The translations under genes were made by a program, and so were the position numbers. A model generated the notes under the pieces. That model did not search any database, was not told the origin of the DNA, and worked only from the letters and a program-made list of their open reading frames with translations. This document shows, piece after piece, positions 6,942 through 64,000 of a stretch of 64,000 nucleotides of DNA. The stretch is taken from IMG/VR virus record IMGVR_UViG_3300033145_003233, positions 310,001 to 374,000 of that record; one strand, 5' to 3'. Position 1 is the stretch's first letter, and every line of letters starts with the position of its first letter.

Positions 6942-8069
6942 CTATTTCTTTCTTACATTAACTAGAATCGGCTCTTTCCAATCAAAAGCTATAACCCATG
7001 CCCAATAACGAACTCTGCCCTCTATTAACTCATAGTCATAAAATCCTGTAGGGTCATCAATGGGAGAAACTTTAACTGGATTACATTTTTTATCTTCTTT
7101 TATTCTTTCAGACAACTCAACAGGACTAGGAGCAAATTTCATATCATTAGCTACAGCTTCTTCCACTGTCTTATATACTTTTCTATTACCTCTTCCTCCA
7201 TCATCAACTCTTATTTTTTCTGGATACACATATATTTTTTCTTTCTTAAAGACCCTGCCTATATCAGAAAAATCTTTTTCTGACATATCAAAATCAGAAG
7301 CTCTAGAATTATCTTCAATATGAGAGATATTAGTACTAGCAGGAATAGCCACTACTGAATCATTATGAGTTAACCAATTTAAAATAAGCTGAACAGAAGT
7401 TATGTCGTATTTGTCTATATATTTCTCAAAGATAATTTTTTCTTTATTATTGCCATAAAATTGTCCCTGATCTAAAGGGCTATAAGCTATCAGCGTGATA
7501 TCATTTTTGTCGCAATAAGAAAGAATTTCTTCCTCCACCCCTCTTTCAAAGAGATTATATTCAAGTTGCATAGAAACAATGTCATATTCAAAATTATTAC
7601 GAGCTTTTACAAACTCTTTAAAAGAAAAATTACTAACACCAACATGTTTAATTTTACCTTCCCTAATAAGCTTACCCATAGTCCACATAGTTTCTCCTAT
7701 GGGGATTTTATAATTCGGCCAGTGGATCTGATATAGATCTATACAATCTATACGTAATCTTTTTAAGCTTTCTTCTGCCGATTTTATAACATCATTAGAA
7801 GATAAATGCTCTGGTGACACTTTTGTAGCTATAACTATTTTATCCTTTTTATGTTGTGGAATACTTCCTATAAGTTCTTCAGCATGACCATTACCATAAG
7901 ATTCAGCAGTATCAAAAAAATTAATCCCACAATCTATGGCTTTTTCTATAGCTCTTTTACATTTTTCATCATTAGAAGTATCTGGCTCTAGATAACCGCC
8001 TATCCCCATTGACCCGAAACCAATAGAGGATATATTTATATCAGTATTGCCTAATTTTTTATATTTCAT
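6942..8069 (-). CDS. Aldo/keto reductase with C-terminal ParB/Srx-like domain
   Basis: GINFFDTAESYG, IDLYQIHWP, GVSNF, IAYSPL; tail YELIEGRVRYWAW. Confidence 0.85.
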   Translation of the reverse strand: MKYKKLGNTDINISSIGFGSMGIGGYLEPDTSNDEKCKRAIEKAIDCGINFFDTAESYGNGHAEELIGSIPQHKKDKIVIATKVSPEHLSSNDVIKSAEESLKRLRIDCIDLYQIHWPNYKIPIGETMWTMGKLIREGKIKHVGVSNFSFKEFVKARNNFEYDIVSMQLEYNLFERGVEEEILSYCDKNDITLIAYSPLDQGQFYGNNKEKIIFEKYIDKYDITSVQLILNWLTHNDSVVAIPASTNISHIEDNSRASDFDMSEKDFSDIGRVFKKEKIYVYPEKIRVDDGGRGNRKVYKTVEEAVANDMKFAPSPVELSERIKEDKKCNPVKVSPIDDPTGFYDYELIEGRVRYWAWVIAFDWKEPILVNVRKK

Positions 8070-8502: not shown

Positions 8503-8906
8503 CCTTCTAACCCATCCACATTAATATTTGTTTTAATATCAACTGTATTCGACTCATCTACTTCCTGCATAATAATATTTTTAATTCTATTTCTAATACC
8601 ATTTAACTGATGAGACAATATGAGATGCTTCCCATAATCTTCACCAGAGCTTTTTTTCATTTTCTCTTTCTCTTTCCATATATAAAGATTAATTTGAGAC
8701 AAAATAATAATTAACCTAATAAATGTTGATGATGGTTTAATATCTCTCTTTTCTAAATCTACATTTATATCATGCATTAGATAACCAATCTCTTTTTCAA
8801 AATCATCTATCTCTGCAATATTATCAACCTCTTTAATTTGCTGTATAGACAAATTATCAATCAAATCTGAAAAAGACAAATGACATTCTCTTCTACCCAC
8901 TAACAC
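8484..8906 (-). CDS. DUF6165/DUF4254-like helical protein, paralog 3
   Basis: FSDLIDNLSIQQIKE...LSQINLYIW...LSHQLNGIRN. Confidence 0.6.
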   Translation of the reverse strand: MLVGRRECHLSFSDLIDNLSIQQIKEVDNIAEIDDFEKEIGYLMHDINVDLEKRDIKPSSTFIRLIIILSQINLYIWKEKEKMKKSSGEDYGKHLILSHQLNGIRNRIKNIIMQEVDESNTVDIKTNINVDGLEGWTISL

Positions 8907-9912: not shown

Positions 9913-10636
9913 ATCTATATCTTTCTAATTTAATATTATTCAAACCCATCACCTCTCTTAATGCTACCGTCTCTCCTGGAGAATCCCGATCATTTAACTC
10001 GTCAAATCCCAACACGCTCCCCTTAACCAAATAAGGCTTTATAATTTCGAGACATTTTTTAGTAGGCTCATATAAATCAAAATCAAAATAAGCTAAAGAT
10101 ACAATAGTTTCTGGATGCGCCTTTAAATATTCAGCTAATTTCTTAGGGCCATCTCCCTTTAATATCTCAAATTTCTTTATATGAGAAATAGGATTGTCTT
10201 TTTCTTGTAAAGTTAAAATGTGTTCTAAATATTTTTCATAGTTGTTAGTTACATTATCTGCCCCATCAACCATCAAAGCAGATTTTCCATCTTTTTTATT
10301 AATATTTATAAAACCTTCAAAAGTATCAAAAGCTAATATCTTTCTATGTCTATTAAATGGCTCATATATACCTCTCAATGCAGCTAAAATAGATGCGTTT
10401 TGTCCCCACCGAGTACCAAATTCTATAATAATTCCATGCTTATCAATTATCTTGTTATATAAAAAATCAAAAAACAAAATACGAGAAAGATTTTTAGAAT
10501 TTAGAAATAACCCCAGATTAGATAAAATTTCATCATCAGGAAGAGGGTTCTCCTTAAAAGCAGTAAGCATTTCATTCCTAGCTTCTTCCTCTTTATCGCT
10601 ACTAAAATCTATATTTCCCAATTTTGTTTTACTCAT
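9881..10636 (-). CDS. TylF/MycF-family sugar O-methyltransferase
   Basis: IIEFGTRWG, FDTFEGF, AYFDFDLYEPT, GFDE. Confidence 0.85.
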   Translation of the reverse strand: MSKTKLGNIDFSSDKEEEARNEMLTAFKENPLPDDEILSNLGLFLNSKNLSRILFFDFLYNKIIDKHGIIIEFGTRWGQNASILAALRGIYEPFNRHRKILAFDTFEGFININKKDGKSALMVDGADNVTNNYEKYLEHILTLQEKDNPISHIKKFEILKGDGPKKLAEYLKAHPETIVSLAYFDFDLYEPTKKCLEIIKPYLVKGSVLGFDELNDRDSPGETVALREVMGLNNIKLERYRYVSRTSYFIL

Positions 10637-10637
10637 T

Positions 10638-11597
10638 TTATAATTTTTCCCAAACAGTTATAGAATAACCATCTCCCAATAGGCTTCCACATGGGACTCT
10701 CACCATTTTAATTATTTTAATTATTTTCTCTTTTTCCATCCTCATTAATTTTGTAAAGAAACCTTTCAAATAATTTCTATTATTTTCTAACTTACAAATA
10801 ATATAATCAGTCAAATTAGTGTCAGTATCATAAAACTCTAACATCGAATTGACATGTACATGTCTACTAAAAGGCTTGTCTAGTAAAAATTGTAAAAAAT
10901 CACCATATCTATTGCCTAGTTGTTCCAATGCTCCCAAAGTAAAGCTAACCCCGCCATCTTGAACTAAAAAATCATTATCAGGATAAAACATATCAAAAAT
11001 GCCACCATGAATATCATAATGAAATTTATCTCTGATAAGATTAATGATTGCTTGCGGTTGGCGGACCCAATCAACACCATAATAACTTTTTTCTGGAGCC
11101 ATCTCACAAAAAGATAACAAATTAGCACATGAGCCACAACCGAACTCGTAGATATTATCCTTGTCTTTTAAAAATGAATCAAAAACAAATGCTCTTATTA
11201 AATCTACAAAATTTTTCTCAAAATTATCATCCACTGATCTCACATAATCTCCAAACAAACGAATAGGAGAACCGCTCCTGAAATACTGAGGAGCCAAAGC
11301 AGCTTTGTCATACCCACTCTCAATAAAATTATCTTGTATTTCCCCCCAACCCTTCTCCCATTTTTCTTTTTTACCTTCACCAGATTTAGTAAAAATCTCT
11401 GCATCTATTCTTTTTATGAGTTCAAGTATTATTTTATCTCTTTCCCTCCTATCAATATGCCTATACCTAAAATCCCTATTATTAATTATATTAACACAGG
11501 ATAATGGCATCTCATTTTGATCAATATCAAAAATCATAGAGAAATCTTTAACGGTAAGATTGTGAATGTTTTCTCCCACTTTATTATTTTTCCACAA
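10638..11597 (-). CDS. Class I SAM-dependent methyltransferase
   Basis: IYEFGCGS, YYGVDW, GALEQLG. Confidence 0.75.
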   Translation of the reverse strand: MWKNNKVGENIHNLTVKDFSMIFDIDQNEMPLSCVNIINNRDFRYRHIDRRERDKIILELIKRIDAEIFTKSGEGKKEKWEKGWGEIQDNFIESGYDKAALAPQYFRSGSPIRLFGDYVRSVDDNFEKNFVDLIRAFVFDSFLKDKDNIYEFGCGSCANLLSFCEMAPEKSYYGVDWVRQPQAIINLIRDKFHYDIHGGIFDMFYPDNDFLVQDGGVSFTLGALEQLGNRYGDFLQFLLDKPFSRHVHVNSMLEFYDTDTNLTDYIICKLENNRNYLKGFFTKLMRMEKEKIIKIIKMVRVPCGSLLGDGYSITVWEKL

Positions 11598-12543
11598 AAG
11601 ATAAAATAGATTTAATTATACTATCTTTATCGAGTCCATATTCAGAACGAATCCAATTTCTGTCCCCGTATTTTTTACAAAATTCATCTGGCAAAGATAT
11701 TTTCTTTAATGGCTTATATATATTATTCTCAACCATAAGCTCACTTATTATACTTCCCAATCCACCGATACAAGAATGCTCCTCCACCACAACTACTCTT
11801 TTAGAACCTGATATTATTCTAGCTGCTTCTTTATCATTAAATGGTTTAATCCTAAATACATCTCTATAAGTAGTGAATACTCCTTCTTTATGAGTTAAAT
11901 ATTCTGCTGCTTCTATTACATCATACATGTTAGTCCCAGTAGAAAAAATTACAACATCTGGTTTCCCATAAGGACCACATATTCCAAGACTAAACGGAAC
12001 TGAGTCCTTATTTGGTTCTGGAAAAATAAAGTTATCATATTCTGGCAAGGGAGAATAATCACCCTTATCTAATCTAATATATGTTGGACCATCATTCTCA
12101 TATGCCTTCTGAGCAACATAAGAATTCATAACTGGACCTGAAGGACTATATATAGTTAAATTAGGAAGAGTTCTCATGATCGCGATATCATTAAGAGAAT
12201 GATGAGTAGGCCCATCATTACTAAACGTAAGACCAGCCCCGATACCAATAATTGTAACAGGTAAATTCATGCAACATAAGTCAATTTTTATCTGCTCAAA
12301 ACACCTTTCTGTTACAAATGGAGTGATAGTATAAACACAAACTTTTTTGCCAGCTTTGGCTAACCCAGCCGCTACACTTATCATATTCTGTTCAGCTACG
12401 CCAACATTGATAAATCTACGCCCCAGTTTTTCTTTAAACTTAGATAAACTAAATGCCCACATATCAGCAGTAAGAAAATAAAAATTATCATCATCTTTAA
12501 CTAAATCATATAATCTGTCAAAAAATGCGTCTCTAAGGTCCAT
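11584..12543 (-). CDS. Transketolase, C-terminal subunit
   Basis: INVGVAEQNM, EQIKID, GPTHH, GPTYIRL, VEEH...GGLGS. Confidence 0.9.
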   Translation of the reverse strand: MDLRDAFFDRLYDLVKDDDNFYFLTADMWAFSLSKFKEKLGRRFINVGVAEQNMISVAAGLAKAGKKVCVYTITPFVTERCFEQIKIDLCCMNLPVTIIGIGAGLTFSNDGPTHHSLNDIAIMRTLPNLTIYSPSGPVMNSYVAQKAYENDGPTYIRLDKGDYSPLPEYDNFIFPEPNKDSVPFSLGICGPYGKPDVVIFSTGTNMYDVIEAAEYLTHKEGVFTTYRDVFRIKPFNDKEAARIISGSKRVVVVEEHSCIGGLGSIISELMVENNIYKPLKKISLPDEFCKKYGDRNWIRSEYGLDKDSIIKSILSFVEK

Positions 12544-59354: not shown

Positions 59355-61244
59355 TTAAAAATCCTTGCATATATCAATCTTAAATGGAGATAAACTATAT
59401 CTCTTCCTTCTATGTGTAGCTTCATCCATAATGCTATGCCAAACTTTTATTGCTTCTTTAGTAGATGACACTGAATTAGGAGACCCTACTGGATGTTGAC
59501 GATACTTATAACACACTCTATTCACGAACATGCCAGGTCCAAATTCTTCTAATCTATACCCCATAAATTTATCAACCCCGCATTTTAATTTTCTATTAAA
59601 TAATTTACGAGGTTTTTCTATTTTATAATTAAATGTTCTCCAGTGACCAAAACCATGAACTCTTTTTTTACCGATATCGAGTAAACAATCTGACCCAGAC
59701 GGAGCAGAACAAAATCCTTTTCTTTTCTTATTCATCTTCATATCACATATTTGAAATTGGGTATATATCCATGCAACATCAGGATACTTATTATATAATT
59801 TCATTATAAATTCCACCGAATCATCTACCAAAGCATCATCAGCATCCACCACCCCAAAAAAAGAACCAGTAGCCGAATTAAACAAATTATGATATGATGC
59901 TCCACAATATAATCGTTGTGGACTTTTAACTAATTTAAATTCTATATCATTTTTAGAAAAATCTTCTTGCATTGTCTTTATTAATTGAGAAGTGCCATCA
60001 TTGGAACAATCATCAGCAAATACCACTTCTAGAGGTCTATATTTTTGTTTAAGAATAGAATGATGCCAATCCATTAAATAAGGAACCTTATTAAAACTTG
60101 ATGTCAAAATGCTAAATTTATCATTATCTCTTTTCGTTTTTACGCTTGCTATGGATGGTTTCTCATCTATTATCTTCACTGGAGCATAATCATCTTTAAT
60201 GCCGCATAATTTATTAATGACACTAATATAGCCTCTAGCCATATATTTAGCATCCAGCTGTTCTTTAAAATATTCTTTCGTACTTATCTTAAGCCTCTCC
60301 AACTTATCAGGATTTTTTATTAAATTAGATAATATCTTTTTGGCTCTTTTTCTATCACTAAAAATATATCCATTAACTCCATGTTTTATGATTTCTTTAT
60401 TGCCATAATTATCGCTACAAACAACAGGAATACCACACGCCATAGCTTCCAAGATTGCCATACTAATACCTTCATCCCTGTTTGTCTCATAAAGAAAAAT
60501 GTCCCAATCTTTCATCATAGCAACTTTTGTTTTAAAATCATTAACTCCTCCCAACATTTGTACTTCATTTTTTCCCCGCTTAGTCATATTCCTAGAACGT
60601 CTATGCCCAGATACTTTATCTCCTATATAATGATGAATCAACCGGCATGGTAAATCAACCTCCGCACACCATTTCAGCCATCCGTCAGAATGCTTCCAGC
60701 TACATACCCTATTGATCCTACCAGTAAGCAAAGCTCCCTTCTTATTCATCCCCCTTGGAGTTATAGGCTCATATCTTTCTTGATTCACCCCATTGTAGAT
60801 AAAACAATGTTTAAGATGAGGATACCATTTACCAAGTTGACGATTCATATTATCGCTTACACCTATCATCAAATCTAATTCCCTCAATCTACCCCATGAA
60901 GTTGTTTTAAATAAAGTATGGTTTATAGCTATAACCTTAGCTTTAGTCCCTTTTTTTATTTGCCTTACAAGATTAACACTAGAATTGGCTAGTTTATGAT
61001 ATAATACAACAGCATTTTTATATTCAGCTATTGTATTTACTATCTTTCTTTCATCTTTCATCCTAACACACGGAACGGCAGAGGTAGAAACAAATAAACT
61101 ATTATAATATCTCTCCGTAGTATAAATAACTATTTGTTTGTGTTCAGGATGGTATTTTTTAATGGCATAATAAAGCTCAAACAACATACTCTGTGCTCCT
61201 CCCACCCCCATGTTGTCAATAATATGAAAAATACAAAAAGACAT
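59355..61244 (-). CDS. Bifunctional GT4-GT2 glycosyltransferase
   Basis: GGAQ, YNGV, EGISMAILEAMACG; then DDCSNDGT, VDADD. Confidence 0.9.
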   Translation of the reverse strand: MSFCIFHIIDNMGVGGAQSMLFELYYAIKKYHPEHKQIVIYTTERYYNSLFVSTSAVPCVRMKDERKIVNTIAEYKNAVVLYHKLANSSVNLVRQIKKGTKAKVIAINHTLFKTTSWGRLRELDLMIGVSDNMNRQLGKWYPHLKHCFIYNGVNQERYEPITPRGMNKKGALLTGRINRVCSWKHSDGWLKWCAEVDLPCRLIHHYIGDKVSGHRRSRNMTKRGKNEVQMLGGVNDFKTKVAMMKDWDIFLYETNRDEGISMAILEAMACGIPVVCSDNYGNKEIIKHGVNGYIFSDRKRAKKILSNLIKNPDKLERLKISTKEYFKEQLDAKYMARGYISVINKLCGIKDDYAPVKIIDEKPSIASVKTKRDNDKFSILTSSFNKVPYLMDWHHSILKQKYRPLEVVFADDCSNDGTSQLIKTMQEDFSKNDIEFKLVKSPQRLYCGASYHNLFNSATGSFFGVVDADDALVDDSVEFIMKLYNKYPDVAWIYTQFQICDMKMNKKRKGFCSAPSGSDCLLDIGKKRVHGFGHWRTFNYKIEKPRKLFNRKLKCGVDKFMGYRLEEFGPGMFVNRVCYKYRQHPVGSPNSVSSTKEAIKVWHSIMDEATHRRKRYSLSPFKIDICKDF

Positions 61245-61867
61245 TATGCTGCTCCATAAATAATTTTATTACCTTTTATTATATTATCTTTCGCCCACAA
61301 TGGCTGAAGATTATTTAAAGACCAACAATATTTAAATTCTACGTCATCAGTGCTTTTATATTTAAAAAATGATTTAGGGATGATATGATCAATATGCCAT
61401 TCTATTGAATTATTCCAAGACATCCCTGGCTGAAATAATTTTTCTAAATGTTCTTTTAAATCCTGAAGAGTATAACCAACAAGGAATTCCCAATGTCTAC
61501 CATTTTTAGATATGCCATTAAAATTAAGAGAATTTCTAATCCCTTTAGATATGTTCTCATTTAATCTAATTATAGGATCTTTCCTTCTCTTTGCCCAATA
61601 TTTTCTATACCATTTTGACCTACAATCTGCAATCTCTGGTCTAGATTGATATTTTCTTTTTTGAGCCATTATTTGATCTTTGTTATCTATAGCATATTTT
61701 TTTTGTTGTTCTTTAACTTTTTCTTTATTTTTTTCATAATATTCTTTCCTTTGTTCTTTAATTTTTTCTTTATTTTCTATATAATATTTCTTTCTTCTTC
61801 TCTTTATCTTTTCTTTATTTTTTTCATAATAATCTTTTTTATATTGCCTTACTTCATCTGTTCTCAT
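61244..61867 (-). CDS. HNH/EndoVII-like free-standing endonuclease with N-terminal YYEKNKEKI-type repeats
   Basis: GMSWNN..EWHIDHIIP...NLQPLW..DN..K. Confidence 0.85.
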   Translation of the reverse strand: MRTDEVRQYKKDYYEKNKEKIKRRRKKYYIENKEKIKEQRKEYYEKNKEKVKEQQKKYAIDNKDQIMAQKRKYQSRPEIADCRSKWYRKYWAKRRKDPIIRLNENISKGIRNSLNFNGISKNGRHWEFLVGYTLQDLKEHLEKLFQPGMSWNNSIEWHIDHIIPKSFFKYKSTDDVEFKYCWSLNNLQPLWAKDNIIKGNKIIYGAA

Positions 61868-62009
61868 TTTTATCCCCTCTATTCTTCTGATCTAAATATT
61901 GATCTAAGACTTGTCTTATCAAAGAAGAAGCAGATGTTTGAATTCTTTTAGCTTCTTTCTTAAAAAACCGTTTTTGTCTTTTTGTAAAATAAATTTGAGT
62001 TCTTATCAT
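61854..62009 (-). CDS. Ribbon-helix-helix (CopG-like) DNA-binding protein, 51 aa
   Basis: Not in ORF track. MIRTQIYFTKRQKRFFKKEAKRIQTSASSLIRQVLDQYLDQKNRGDKNENR*; AGGTG RBS; stop overlaps the HNH start. Confidence 0.75.
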   Translation of the reverse strand: MIRTQIYFTKRQKRFFKKEAKRIQTSASSLIRQVLDQYLDQKNRGDKNENR

Positions 62010-62021
62010 TTTAACACCTAT

Positions 62022-62043
62022 ATACATATATCATACATATATC
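62022..62043. repeat. Perfect 11-bp tandem direct repeat (candidate RHH operator)
   Basis: ATACATATATC twice, directly upstream of the RHH gene RBS. Confidence 0.55.
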
Positions 62044-63175: not shown

Positions 63176-63910
63176 TCATACCCCTTTATAAACGTTCTTC
63201 ACATATTTAGACAATATAAGATACGCCATAGTTAAGTTATCGGAATTAAAAACAAAATCTTCATACTTATAAGACGGTGACACTCTTAATAAATGACATG
63301 GAATAGTTGGCCTCACCAAATCCTCTGATATAAATTTACCAATCATTTCCATCTCTTCTTCTATCTTATCGTCAGAAAAATATAATGGGATGCTAATCTC
63401 TATATGAGGATTGGCAAAACGAATAGCCCAGTTATTACAAGCTTGTCGTATTCTATCTTTAATTACATAATGCTTAACACCAGCAATAGAATAAAATGAT
63501 TCCTCAGATCCCTTCCAATCTATATTAATAGCATCAGCTACCAAACAAATATATCTCCATGGCCTTTCCTCGACATAAGCATTAGTCTTTATAATAAACT
63601 TAAGATCATTCTTATGACATTCTTCTCCTAGTTCTATCAAAAATTCATAATGAATGGTAGGTTCATTAAATGTCATGCAAATACTATCACAATCGCTCTG
63701 TTTAGCCATAGTAACCAGCTGTAAGGGATCATAATGAAAAGACTTAACCTGCAAATCTTGCTGACTAATCTGCCAATTTTCACAATTATGAACTATGAAG
63801 CCATTAGCAACATAATTTTCATATCCTGGGACATTAAAATTATATACCTTCTGCTTCTTTTTTAATCTTTTAATAGATTTTATTTTTTTATATTCTAAAT
63901 TATCATCCAT
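63176..63910 (-). CDS. C-terminal intein fragment (IntC, 42 aa) fused to the C-extein of an AmmeMemoRadiSam/PflA-like radical SAM enzyme
   Basis: VYNFNV...NYVANGFIVHN/C (blocks F and G), then CENWQISQ, TFNEP, TNAY, NIDWKG. Confidence 0.85.
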   Translation of the reverse strand: MDDNLEYKKIKSIKRLKKKQKVYNFNVPGYENYVANGFIVHNCENWQISQQDLQVKSFHYDPLQLVTMAKQSDCDSICMTFNEPTIHYEFLIELGEECHKNDLKFIIKTNAYVEERPWRYICLVADAINIDWKGSEESFYSIAGVKHYVIKDRIRQACNNWAIRFANPHIEISIPLYFSDDKIEEEMEMIGKFISEDLVRPTIPCHLLRVSPSYKYEDFVFNSDNLTMAYLILSKYVKNVYKGV

Positions 63911-64000
63911 AATATCATTGCACTGTCTTTCTCAGAATTACATGACTCTTATCTCACTTAATTTTAAAATGGATTGATTCTTTTATATATATGATTCGAA

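Follow-up and report, generated by a model that had tools for sequence, protein, structure and literature searches.

The window analysed here is a stretch of 64,000 nucleotides from the IMG/VR virus record IMGVR_UViG_3300033145_003233 (positions 310,001 to 374,000), and near its end lies one part of a radical SAM (S-adenosylmethionine) enzyme gene that appears to be divided by a split intein. The source contig is Ga0366840_1000004 (547,943 bp; Joint Genome Institute (JGI) sample 3300033145), a viral genome in IMG/VR. The locus designated L001 takes in 10 kb of this contig on each side; a window position equals 73911 minus the L001 position, a mapping that was verified base for base. The gene in question is an open reading frame (ORF) on the minus strand that runs from 63910 to 63176 (L001:10001-10735(+)), with its stop codon at 63176-63178, and encodes 244 residues. 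Residues 1-42, reading MDDNLEYKKIKSIKRL...VYNFNVPGYENYVANGFIVHN, correspond to the C-terminal half of an intein (IntC): they match profile positions 116-155 of 155 in Pfam PF14890 (Intein_splicing; 36.6 bits, cut-off 35.8) as well as TIGR01443 (intein_Cterm; 32.6 bits, cut-off 15.6). IntC ends in ...FIVHN and is directly followed by a Cys at +1, so that the His-Asn terminus and Cys+1 are both in place. This residue 43 is the Cys of CENWQISQ, and residues 41-241 align with positions 84-282 of TIGR04337 (E 1.6e-21), the AmmeMemoRadiSam equivalog model. The features of this end of the window, all on the minus strand, are as follows.

63785..63910, minus strand: IntC, 42 codons including the initiator Met, ending in His-Asn (PF14890, TIGR01443; VYNF block, H41 and N42 invariant in 16 relatives)
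63782..63784, minus strand: Cys+1 codon TGT, the candidate junction nucleophile and third Cys of CxxxCxxC (C43 invariant; the intein-less relatives L003 and P0015 have CxxxCxxC-EN here)
63179..63781, minus strand: remaining C-extein, 201 residues, radical SAM core with NEP motif and TIM-barrel strands (TIGR04337; relatives 45-59% identical)
63911..63963, minus strand: 53-nt spacer 5' of the IntC start, no strong Shine-Dalgarno sequence (read from the sequence)
63964..64000, minus strand: 3' end of a cargo gene for a 353/362-aa secreted repeat protein (L001:8859-9947, placed by the L001-window mapping)

An initial annotation, made from the letters of the window only, had described the ATG at 63910, the 42 residues and the Cys+1 of CENWQISQ, and a re-reading of the sequence gives the same picture. 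It had also claimed three in-frame stops and stops in the other two frames within the 90 nt upstream (63911-64000). These are seen again, the in-frame stops being TAA, TAA and TGA; a stop at 63964-63966 is the end of the unrelated upstream gene, whose final 12 codons occupy 63967-64000. The IntC match that it proposed by size and motif is borne out by both intein profiles, each above its cut-off.

The N-terminal part of the gene lies outside the window, as had been supposed. On the same strand and 2.5 kb upstream of the C-half, L001:6916-7488(+) encodes a 190-aa protein composed of a 92-aa N-extein, ending in GCSLKCVF, and a 98-aa N-terminal intein half (IntN). Residues 14-93 align with TIGR04337 positions 7-86 (E 3e-26), and residues 93-166 match TIGR01445 (intein_Nterm; 29.3 bits, cut-off 24.5). 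With a slash at the extein-intein junction, the protein reads ...GGYGCSLKCVF/CLPTGTLISTP...TPEHPVMTK...DDEVLCDKTCL, followed by TAA TAA. Cys1 of the intein is Cys93, straight after CSLKCVF, in a column that is invariant in 16 N-halves; block B of IntN is TPEHP, in which T159 and H162 are invariant. The initial annotation had proposed to look beyond position 64000 for an N-extein ending in CxxxCxx, an IntN with C1 and TxxH, a stop, and possibly an intervening endonuclease gene. GCSLKCVF, Cys1, TPEH and TAA TAA are all found, an HNH gene lies between the halves, and the contrary outcome that it had named, the absence of an IntN gene, does not hold for the source contig. On the TIGR04337 profile the two halves abut, the N-half reaching position 86 and the C-half starting from 84. 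The net charge of IntN is -13 and that of IntC +5 (its first 22 residues alone, +6).

The two halves are separate translation units: IntN ends in TAA TAA, and IntC has its own ATG and three upstream in-frame stops. In the N-half gene, which overlaps a peptide deformylase (def) gene at the latter's end, a purine-rich, Shine-Dalgarno-like AAGAGGGAAAGAG precedes the ATG. Besides the parts of the HNH gene and a small ORF, both described below, the gap in L001 holds cargo consisting of an 82-aa ORF and the 353/362-aa protein (L001:8859-9947), which has a signal-peptide-like N-terminus and repeated YDKNNNKIY-type motifs; searches of Pfam and NCBIfam gave nothing useful for either cargo ORF. The 353/362-aa gene is closely preceded by a terminator-like hairpin (L001 8752-8768) and a near-consensus promoter-like site (8795-8823) and closely followed by the C-half, which may therefore be co-transcribed with it. 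The cargo varies by locus, with an IrrE/M78 peptidase-like ORF in L011:7774-8235 and a MerR-family regulator in L014:9622-10017, which makes the gap look like a hotspot for insertions.

The position of the splice junction is fixed by relatives that lack an intein or carry a contiguous one. The intein-less relatives read CNLNCEWC-ENNTISQ (L003, on a 351-kb viral contig) and CQLSCKFC-ENHKLSQ (P0015), and the contiguous-intein relative P0020 (416 aa) reads CNMTCAF/CLPKD...DDEVLC-V-DNNLEFKKIK...VVHN/CENSAYSQ, with slashes at the splice sites. These alignments place the junction between the second and third cluster Cys, so that the N-extein contributes two cluster ligands and the +1 Cys contributes the third. 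In the N-half, Cys1 of the intein stands at the place of the third Cys, and the true third ligand would, by this alignment, be Cys+1 of the C-extein. The split point itself falls after ...EVLC. The expected spliced protein has about 294 residues (92 + 202), compared with 281-283 in the intein-less forms. The P0020 locus is syntenic with L001, with NADAR, cREC_REC, NeuB, DUF1257 and peptide deformylase genes upstream. In L103:1-1002, the syntenic relative with the contiguous intein, Tad5-like and Apyc1-like (anti-Pycsar) proteins are encoded upstream, which supports a phage origin of these contigs.

The CxxxCxxC motif of the radical SAM enzyme becomes complete only on joining CSLKCVF with CENW, and the core matches PflA-type activases. 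The model of P0020 finds PflA 3cb8 at E 2e-7 and 3can at a template modelling (TM) score of 0.80. The initial annotation had placed the third Fe-S ligand in a C(Q/E)NW.ISQ motif, in agreement with the CxxxCxxC-EN of the intein-less relatives and with the contiguous relative. Its assignment of the host to the AmmeMemoRadiSam type stands as a likeness to TIGR04337 and fails as family membership. The two halves score 92.1 and 76.6 bits and the intein-less relatives 164.6 and 169.6 bits, all below the cut-off of 220, by which membership of the equivalog is ruled out; the final ~70 profile positions are absent from the intein-less relatives, and the genes called in the 10 kb to each side include neither AMMECR1 nor Memo. 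Glycyl-radical activase models score far behind TIGR04337 on the intein-less relatives. From these matches, the host would be a PflA/AmmeMemoRadiSam-like radical SAM enzyme of unassigned substrate.

The split arrangement is found well beyond the source contig. Word-indexed searches of metagenome data collected ~21 other C-half clusters (232-258 aa, 45-59% identical) and ~30 N-half clusters (about 170-211 aa), with overall identities of 45-65%; several N-half/C-half pairs come from contigs of equal length. Within the protein-size range of the C-half search, a single contiguous form was found. Nine further metagenome contigs hold both halves (L006, L007, L009, L010, L011, L013, L014, L016 and L017), and at 10/10 such loci the gene is split, with the halves on the same strand, in N-to-C order and 0.3-4 kb apart. 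L001 and its relatives L006-L017 show what defines a fractured gene, namely halves in their original order and orientation at one locus. Across 16 N-halves Cys1 and Thr-x-x-His are invariant, as are H41, N42, C43 and the VYNF block across 16 C-halves. IntC has a proportion of nonsynonymous differences (pN) of 0.13 against 0.63 for synonymous differences (pS), an uncorrected pN/pS of ~0.2, which indicates that it is under strong purifying selection. The nearest solved intein is the naturally split NrdJ-1 (8ubs/9omb; E 4e-7), and the alignment runs through TP(D/E)HPV.TK.R..V.A..LT.DDE as far as the break point.

Other searches delimit this distribution. Megablast with the end of the window gave no match among GenBank phages, single-sequence scans of IMG/VR returned the source contig and the intein-less relative on the 351-kb viral contig only, and an alignment-based viral scan gave nothing beyond short IntC-like modules. 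A scan of genome contigs found the split PflA-like gene in no cellular genome, all of its 72 loci being IntC-like modules inside long ORFs. These loci (L030-L101; for example L039:1-4701 and L035:6284-10258) carry modules of the form VY.F.VP.YE.Y.ANG..VHN in ORFs of ~800-1570 aa, some with two or three modules each. Their hosts are mostly DPANN archaea (Woese-, Pace-, Nano- and Iainarchaeota) and a few bacteria of the Candidate Phyla Radiation (CPR), and the modules resemble contiguous inteins of other host proteins.

An ORF of 250-296 aa, encoded on the strand opposite to the halves, occupies the gap of 7/9 related phage-type loci. It carries the HNH motif H-H...N...H...H: H168, N184 and H193 do not vary over 48 aligned sequences, and H167 and H197 hardly do. 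Its AlphaFold2 model has a mean predicted local distance difference test (pLDDT) score of 91.9 and retrieves many phage HNH endonucleases from the BFVD viral models with Foldseek (E 5e-5 to 1e-3); against the PDB, Foldseek gives weak HNH matches and no significant whole-chain match. We regard this ORF as a putative HNH homing endonuclease, an activity inferred from motif and fold. In the source contig the gene (L001:7202-8228, minus; beyond the window) is divided between two overlapping frames, L001:7563-8228 (222 aa) and 7202-7672 (157 aa). The frame breaks at a run of nine A residues on the minus strand (A9; L001 7609-7617), where one A fewer would restore the reading of the relatives; either a true inactivation of the gene or an assembly error in the homopolymer may lie behind it. 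With its endonuclease gene frameshifted, the element is probably immobile in the source contig, with the intein retained. Upstream, a conserved small ORF of 46-53 aa abuts the HNH gene (L001:8228-8377 (minus), L006:6918-7076, L007:5190-5333, L009:982-1119, L010:751-897). The 49-aa version of L001 has weak ribbon-helix-helix matches (ParG, E 0.002), and this ORF, usual in phage-type loci and absent in compact spore-photoproduct-lyase (SPL)-type loci, may regulate the endonuclease.

These SPL-type loci carry the same element in a second host family, again with the HNH ORF. Here, IntN halves 51-60% identical to that of L001 are fused to the N-terminal part of SPL-family proteins (PF20903/TIGR03886). 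L102, from the cyanobacterium Nodosilinea, has an N-half (10001-10627) that ends in ...GCAMACAY/CVVSGTLISTP..., a C-half (11210-12091) that begins MPSYKKITSIKRIQATTKVHNFHVPGHESYVANGIVTHN/CYVARR, and in the gap a 272-aa HNH ORF (10362-11180, minus) that is antisense over IntN and uncalled in the public annotation. The arrangement in L104, L105 and L017/L106 is as in L102. The element accordingly targets the same CxxxCxxC position in two radical SAM families, and its minimal form, as read from these loci, would be IntN / inverted HNH / IntC. In L104 (2516-3127, minus) it is the N-half that is left uncalled; since gene callers list one of two overlapping ORFs, such elements are probably under-reported.

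Taken together, the locus most likely carries a naturally split intein, active in trans-splicing, in a fractured radical SAM gene, and the element would be a functional fractured gene of a huge phage. Two proteins would be made: a 190-aa N-half (92 residues of extein and the 98-residue acidic IntN) and a 244-aa C-half (the 42-residue basic IntC and 202 residues of extein). The oppositely charged IntN and IntC would associate and fold into a HINT (Hedgehog/intein) domain, resulting in class-1 splicing in trans: a thioester at Cys1, trans-thioesterification to Cys+1 and cyclisation of the terminal Asn. This would yield a product of ~294 aa with an intact CSLKCVFCENW, and the [4Fe-4S]/SAM site could presumably form only after splicing. 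The HNH homing endonuclease, encoded on the opposite strand between the halves, would spread or maintain the element, with the 3' third of its gene co-encoded antisense with IntN.

Several observations weigh against this picture. The C-half is without an obvious ribosome-binding site, a caveat of the initial annotation that was fair, the best candidate being GAGAAAG 16-23 nt 5' of the ATG, and with four or five other ORFs between the halves in L001, stoichiometric co-expression is not guaranteed. The model of P0020 matches the inteins 2lwy, 4o1r and 6qaz (E 5e-7 to 2e-5), with the IntC segment at a pLDDT of 23-33, too poor to bear out the HINT fold of the joined halves. For the endonuclease, Pfam matches are weak (HNH_2 at 15-16 bits, cut-off 21; NUMOD1 weak). 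Finally, the block F Asp of the solved inteins 6rpp and 4o1r (VYD/VFD) is an Asn in 16/16 aligned C-halves.

This last substitution would suit intein halves that serve as a dimerisation module only, with the enzyme working as a non-covalent heterodimer in the manner of the NrdA of phage Aeh1, which is split but has no intein; that a fractured gene can be functional without one is discussed in PMC2677866. We consider this improbable, as the strict conservation of Cys1, TxxH, the penultimate His, the terminal Asn and Cys+1 would then be needless, and a HINT domain of ~140 residues would remain within the cluster-binding loop. About as improbable is a decaying element, in which a stop and insertions entered a formerly contiguous intein and left the ORFs as non-functional remnants of a dead radical SAM gene. 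The 2.5-kb gap with unrelated cargo genes, the frameshifted endonuclease gene of the source contig and the existence of a contiguous relative would all fit such decay. However, the split form is the rule (~21 C-half clusters against one contiguous form in the same size range) and persists throughout the family at 45-65% identity, both ORFs are intact at every locus, and neither the catalytic residues of the intein nor the motifs of the radical SAM enzyme vary. The strong purifying selection on IntC (pN/pS ~0.2, uncorrected) likewise argues for a functional fractured gene rather than decay or misassembly, the two outcomes that the initial annotation had listed as refuting a split intein and that the independent contigs also oppose. 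An artefact, whether through chimeric assembly, a frameshift in sequencing or a recoded stop that masks one ORF, is conceivable for a metagenome assembly, and stop-codon recoding occurs in some huge phages, yet it is very improbable here, given the same architecture in at least 10 independent contigs from different projects, an SPL-type version in a cyanobacterial genome, and 2.5 kb with opposite-strand genes between the halves; recoding is ruled out by the TAA TAA after IntN (TGA, TAG or TAA at other loci) and by normal stop usage in the long ORFs of the window (TAA 60, TAG 19, TGA 6), which fits the standard code.

A further property of the element is the overlap of its two genes. At every examined locus the HNH ORF runs antisense across the whole IntN region (~290 nt, its last ~95 codons) and terminates only a few codons from the intein start. 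The codons for the final two conserved His in the HNH motif (NRFYHIELHR) lie antisense to those of the IntN tail EDDEVLCDKTCL. When synonymous IntN codons are resampled from the codon usage of each locus, ~5 antisense stops are expected and none is seen save the terminal one (P about 0.001 per locus, ranging over 0.0004-0.01 at the AT-rich loci; P 0.01-0.07 for contiguous and SPL-type loci, with P = 0.07 in the GC-richer L102; the loci share ancestry). In AT-rich loci, the same antisense frame contains 5-8 stops per ~90 codons of N-extein and 20-29 per ~240 codons of the C-half. Synonymous divergence follows the same boundaries, with a three-fold depression in IntN: pS is ~0.8 in the N-extein and drops to 0.15-0.39 within IntN, with medians of 0.25 in IntN, 0.63 in IntC and 0.74 in the C-extein. 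The frames are related such that each third position of an IntN codon is the second position of an HNH codon, so that a low pS in IntN means purifying selection on the HNH tail. Recent transfer alone fails to explain it, as IntC belongs to the same mobile unit and is near saturation in pS. In the AlphaFold2 model, the tail (residues ~200-289) consists of seven helices at pLDDT 92-98, for which Foldseek found no structural relative in the PDB. In an exhaustive HMMER search, the ~30 closest relatives mostly align through the tail, and ~950 more distant HNH proteins align only to the HNH motif and end soon after.

On balance, we see roughly even grounds for and against a combined reading in which a ~95-codon unit encodes both IntN and a folded HNH tail, both under purifying selection, and splicing is possibly gated by redox state or the Fe-S cluster. 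Since the wobble base of IntN is the middle base of the endonuclease codon, neither gene could drift or be deleted without damage to the other, and the cluster of Cys-7, Cys-3, Cys1 and Cys+1 at the junction could gate splicing in such a way that an oxygen-sensitive enzyme is assembled only in reducing conditions. A somewhat doubtful but serious alternative is that the antisense tail is no functional domain, and that another constraint (RNA structure or antisense regulation) or recent spread of the DNA keeps the frame open. Distant HNH relatives end shortly after the motif, Leu-rich helices readily score high in AlphaFold2, and the GC-richer L102 reaches P = 0.07 only; moreover, the frame is still open where the rest of the HNH gene is lost (L011, L013 and the contiguous L103), which fits recent loss. 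Set against this are a frame that stays open at all loci, across two host gene families and 40-60% protein divergence, the pS of 0.63 in IntC against 0.25 in IntN of the same mobile unit, the location of the final two HNH-motif His antisense to the IntN tail, and the high pLDDT of the tail itself.

Fractured genes with split inteins and a free-standing endonuclease are known from eight types of DNA-metabolism enzymes (Dassa et al. 2009, PMC2677866). In that study the endonucleases are GIY-YIG or Vsr-like, co-oriented, and overlap the IntC start by 6-69 bp; its authors predicted that HNH genes might act likewise, and reported an acidic IntN and basic IntC in NrdJ-1, IMPDH-1 and NrdA-2. The locus described here resembles the marine-phage fractured genes (gp41-1, NrdJ-1, IMPDH-1, NrdA-2) in its in-place break at a catalytic motif with order and strand kept. 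It resembles NrdJ-1 further in the equal charge polarity of the halves and in a homologous break point (8ubs). It differs in its radical SAM host, which is outside the eight listed enzyme types, in the HNH endonuclease, which is not co-oriented and runs ~290 nt antisense over IntN from the opposite strand, and in the extra cargo genes in the gap of the source contig. The cyanobacterial DnaE intein is also a split class-1 intein with Cys1, Cys+1 and charge-complementary halves; in contrast, its halves are genomically distant, it has no associated endonuclease, and its host is DNA polymerase III alpha. Antisense LAGLIDADG or Vsr-like endonucleases have been described inside contiguous inteins (actinobacteriophage survey, bioRxiv 10.1101/2025.01.02.630785; also Gorbalenya 1998). 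These share the orientation of the homing endonuclease ORF opposite to the intein strand, whereas the present case has an HNH endonuclease, a split intein, and an overlap that takes in the splicing domain (IntN) itself rather than just the linker or endonuclease region.

Inteins in radical SAM enzymes are likewise not new in themselves. The MoaA intein of Pyrococcus abyssi is contiguous, and a native disulfide between Cys-3 and Cys1 controls its splicing (reviewed in PMC3922620). The present element shares the radical SAM host and the Cys at -3 and 1, and its N-half adds Cys-7; the MoaA host belongs to a different radical SAM family and is archaeal. From the general CxxxCxxC motif we infer that the MoaA insertion point is the same, just before the third cluster Cys, and by analogy we hypothesise that the split intein here may be under redox control. 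Furthermore, 48 inteins have been counted in SplB of Actinobacteria (Novikova et al. 2015, PMC4760082), and NCBIfam NF038136 models the SplB/Rv2578c family. This profile is colinear across the extein-intein junction of the N-halves, which suggests that the SplB/Rv2578c inteins sit at the same site; they differ in being contiguous, and the scores here are 14-22 bits against a cut-off of 700. The initial annotation had known of no described split intein in the host family. A literature search covering part of the journals found no split intein in a radical SAM enzyme, and no HNH gene antisense over an intein splicing domain; the statement needs qualifying by the contiguous inteins known at what is probably this position (MoaA, SplB/Rv2578c). 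What appears new is the split form, the host subfamily and the inverted, overlapping HNH gene, the principle being already established.

With this locus, a metabolic iron-sulfur enzyme would join the hosts of natural split inteins, which so far are almost all enzymes of DNA metabolism. The break falls inside the cluster-binding motif, and enzyme activity should therefore depend absolutely on splicing, making the system a natural test case for conditional, possibly redox-gated, enzyme assembly. For protein engineering, the family offers the natural diversity of more than 20 related, NrdJ-1-like split inteins of 98 + 42 residues with a Cys+1 junction. The overlap, if true, would be a long conserved case of two folded domains encoded on opposite strands, and it suggests a route by which an endonuclease gene and an intein become mutually dependent.

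The remainder of the window (1-63175) is almost gapless, with 78/86 ORFs of at least 120 aa on the minus strand, and the C-half heads this block. One gene downstream of the C-half, a second pair of a small ORF and a nuclease lies at 61244-62027 (minus). Its 57-aa ORF looks ribbon-helix-helix-like by eye. The 207-aa protein that follows combines YY..NKEKIK repeats, rich in lysine, with an H-x-DH...N...N motif at its C-terminus of the kind typical for HNH nucleases; it matches no Pfam family at E <= 0.001 and, beyond this motif, has no detectable kinship to the intein-linked HNH protein. ORFs sampled from the rest of the window encode a NeuB with SAF and cupin domains, NAD-dependent epimerases/dehydratases, an aldo-keto reductase, E1 dehydrogenase and transketolase-like subunits, glycosyltransferases (families 1 and 2) and a TylF-like methyltransferase. 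By these predicted functions, the window would represent a block for sugar and nonulosonic-acid biosynthesis and glycosylation that is unusually large for a virus.

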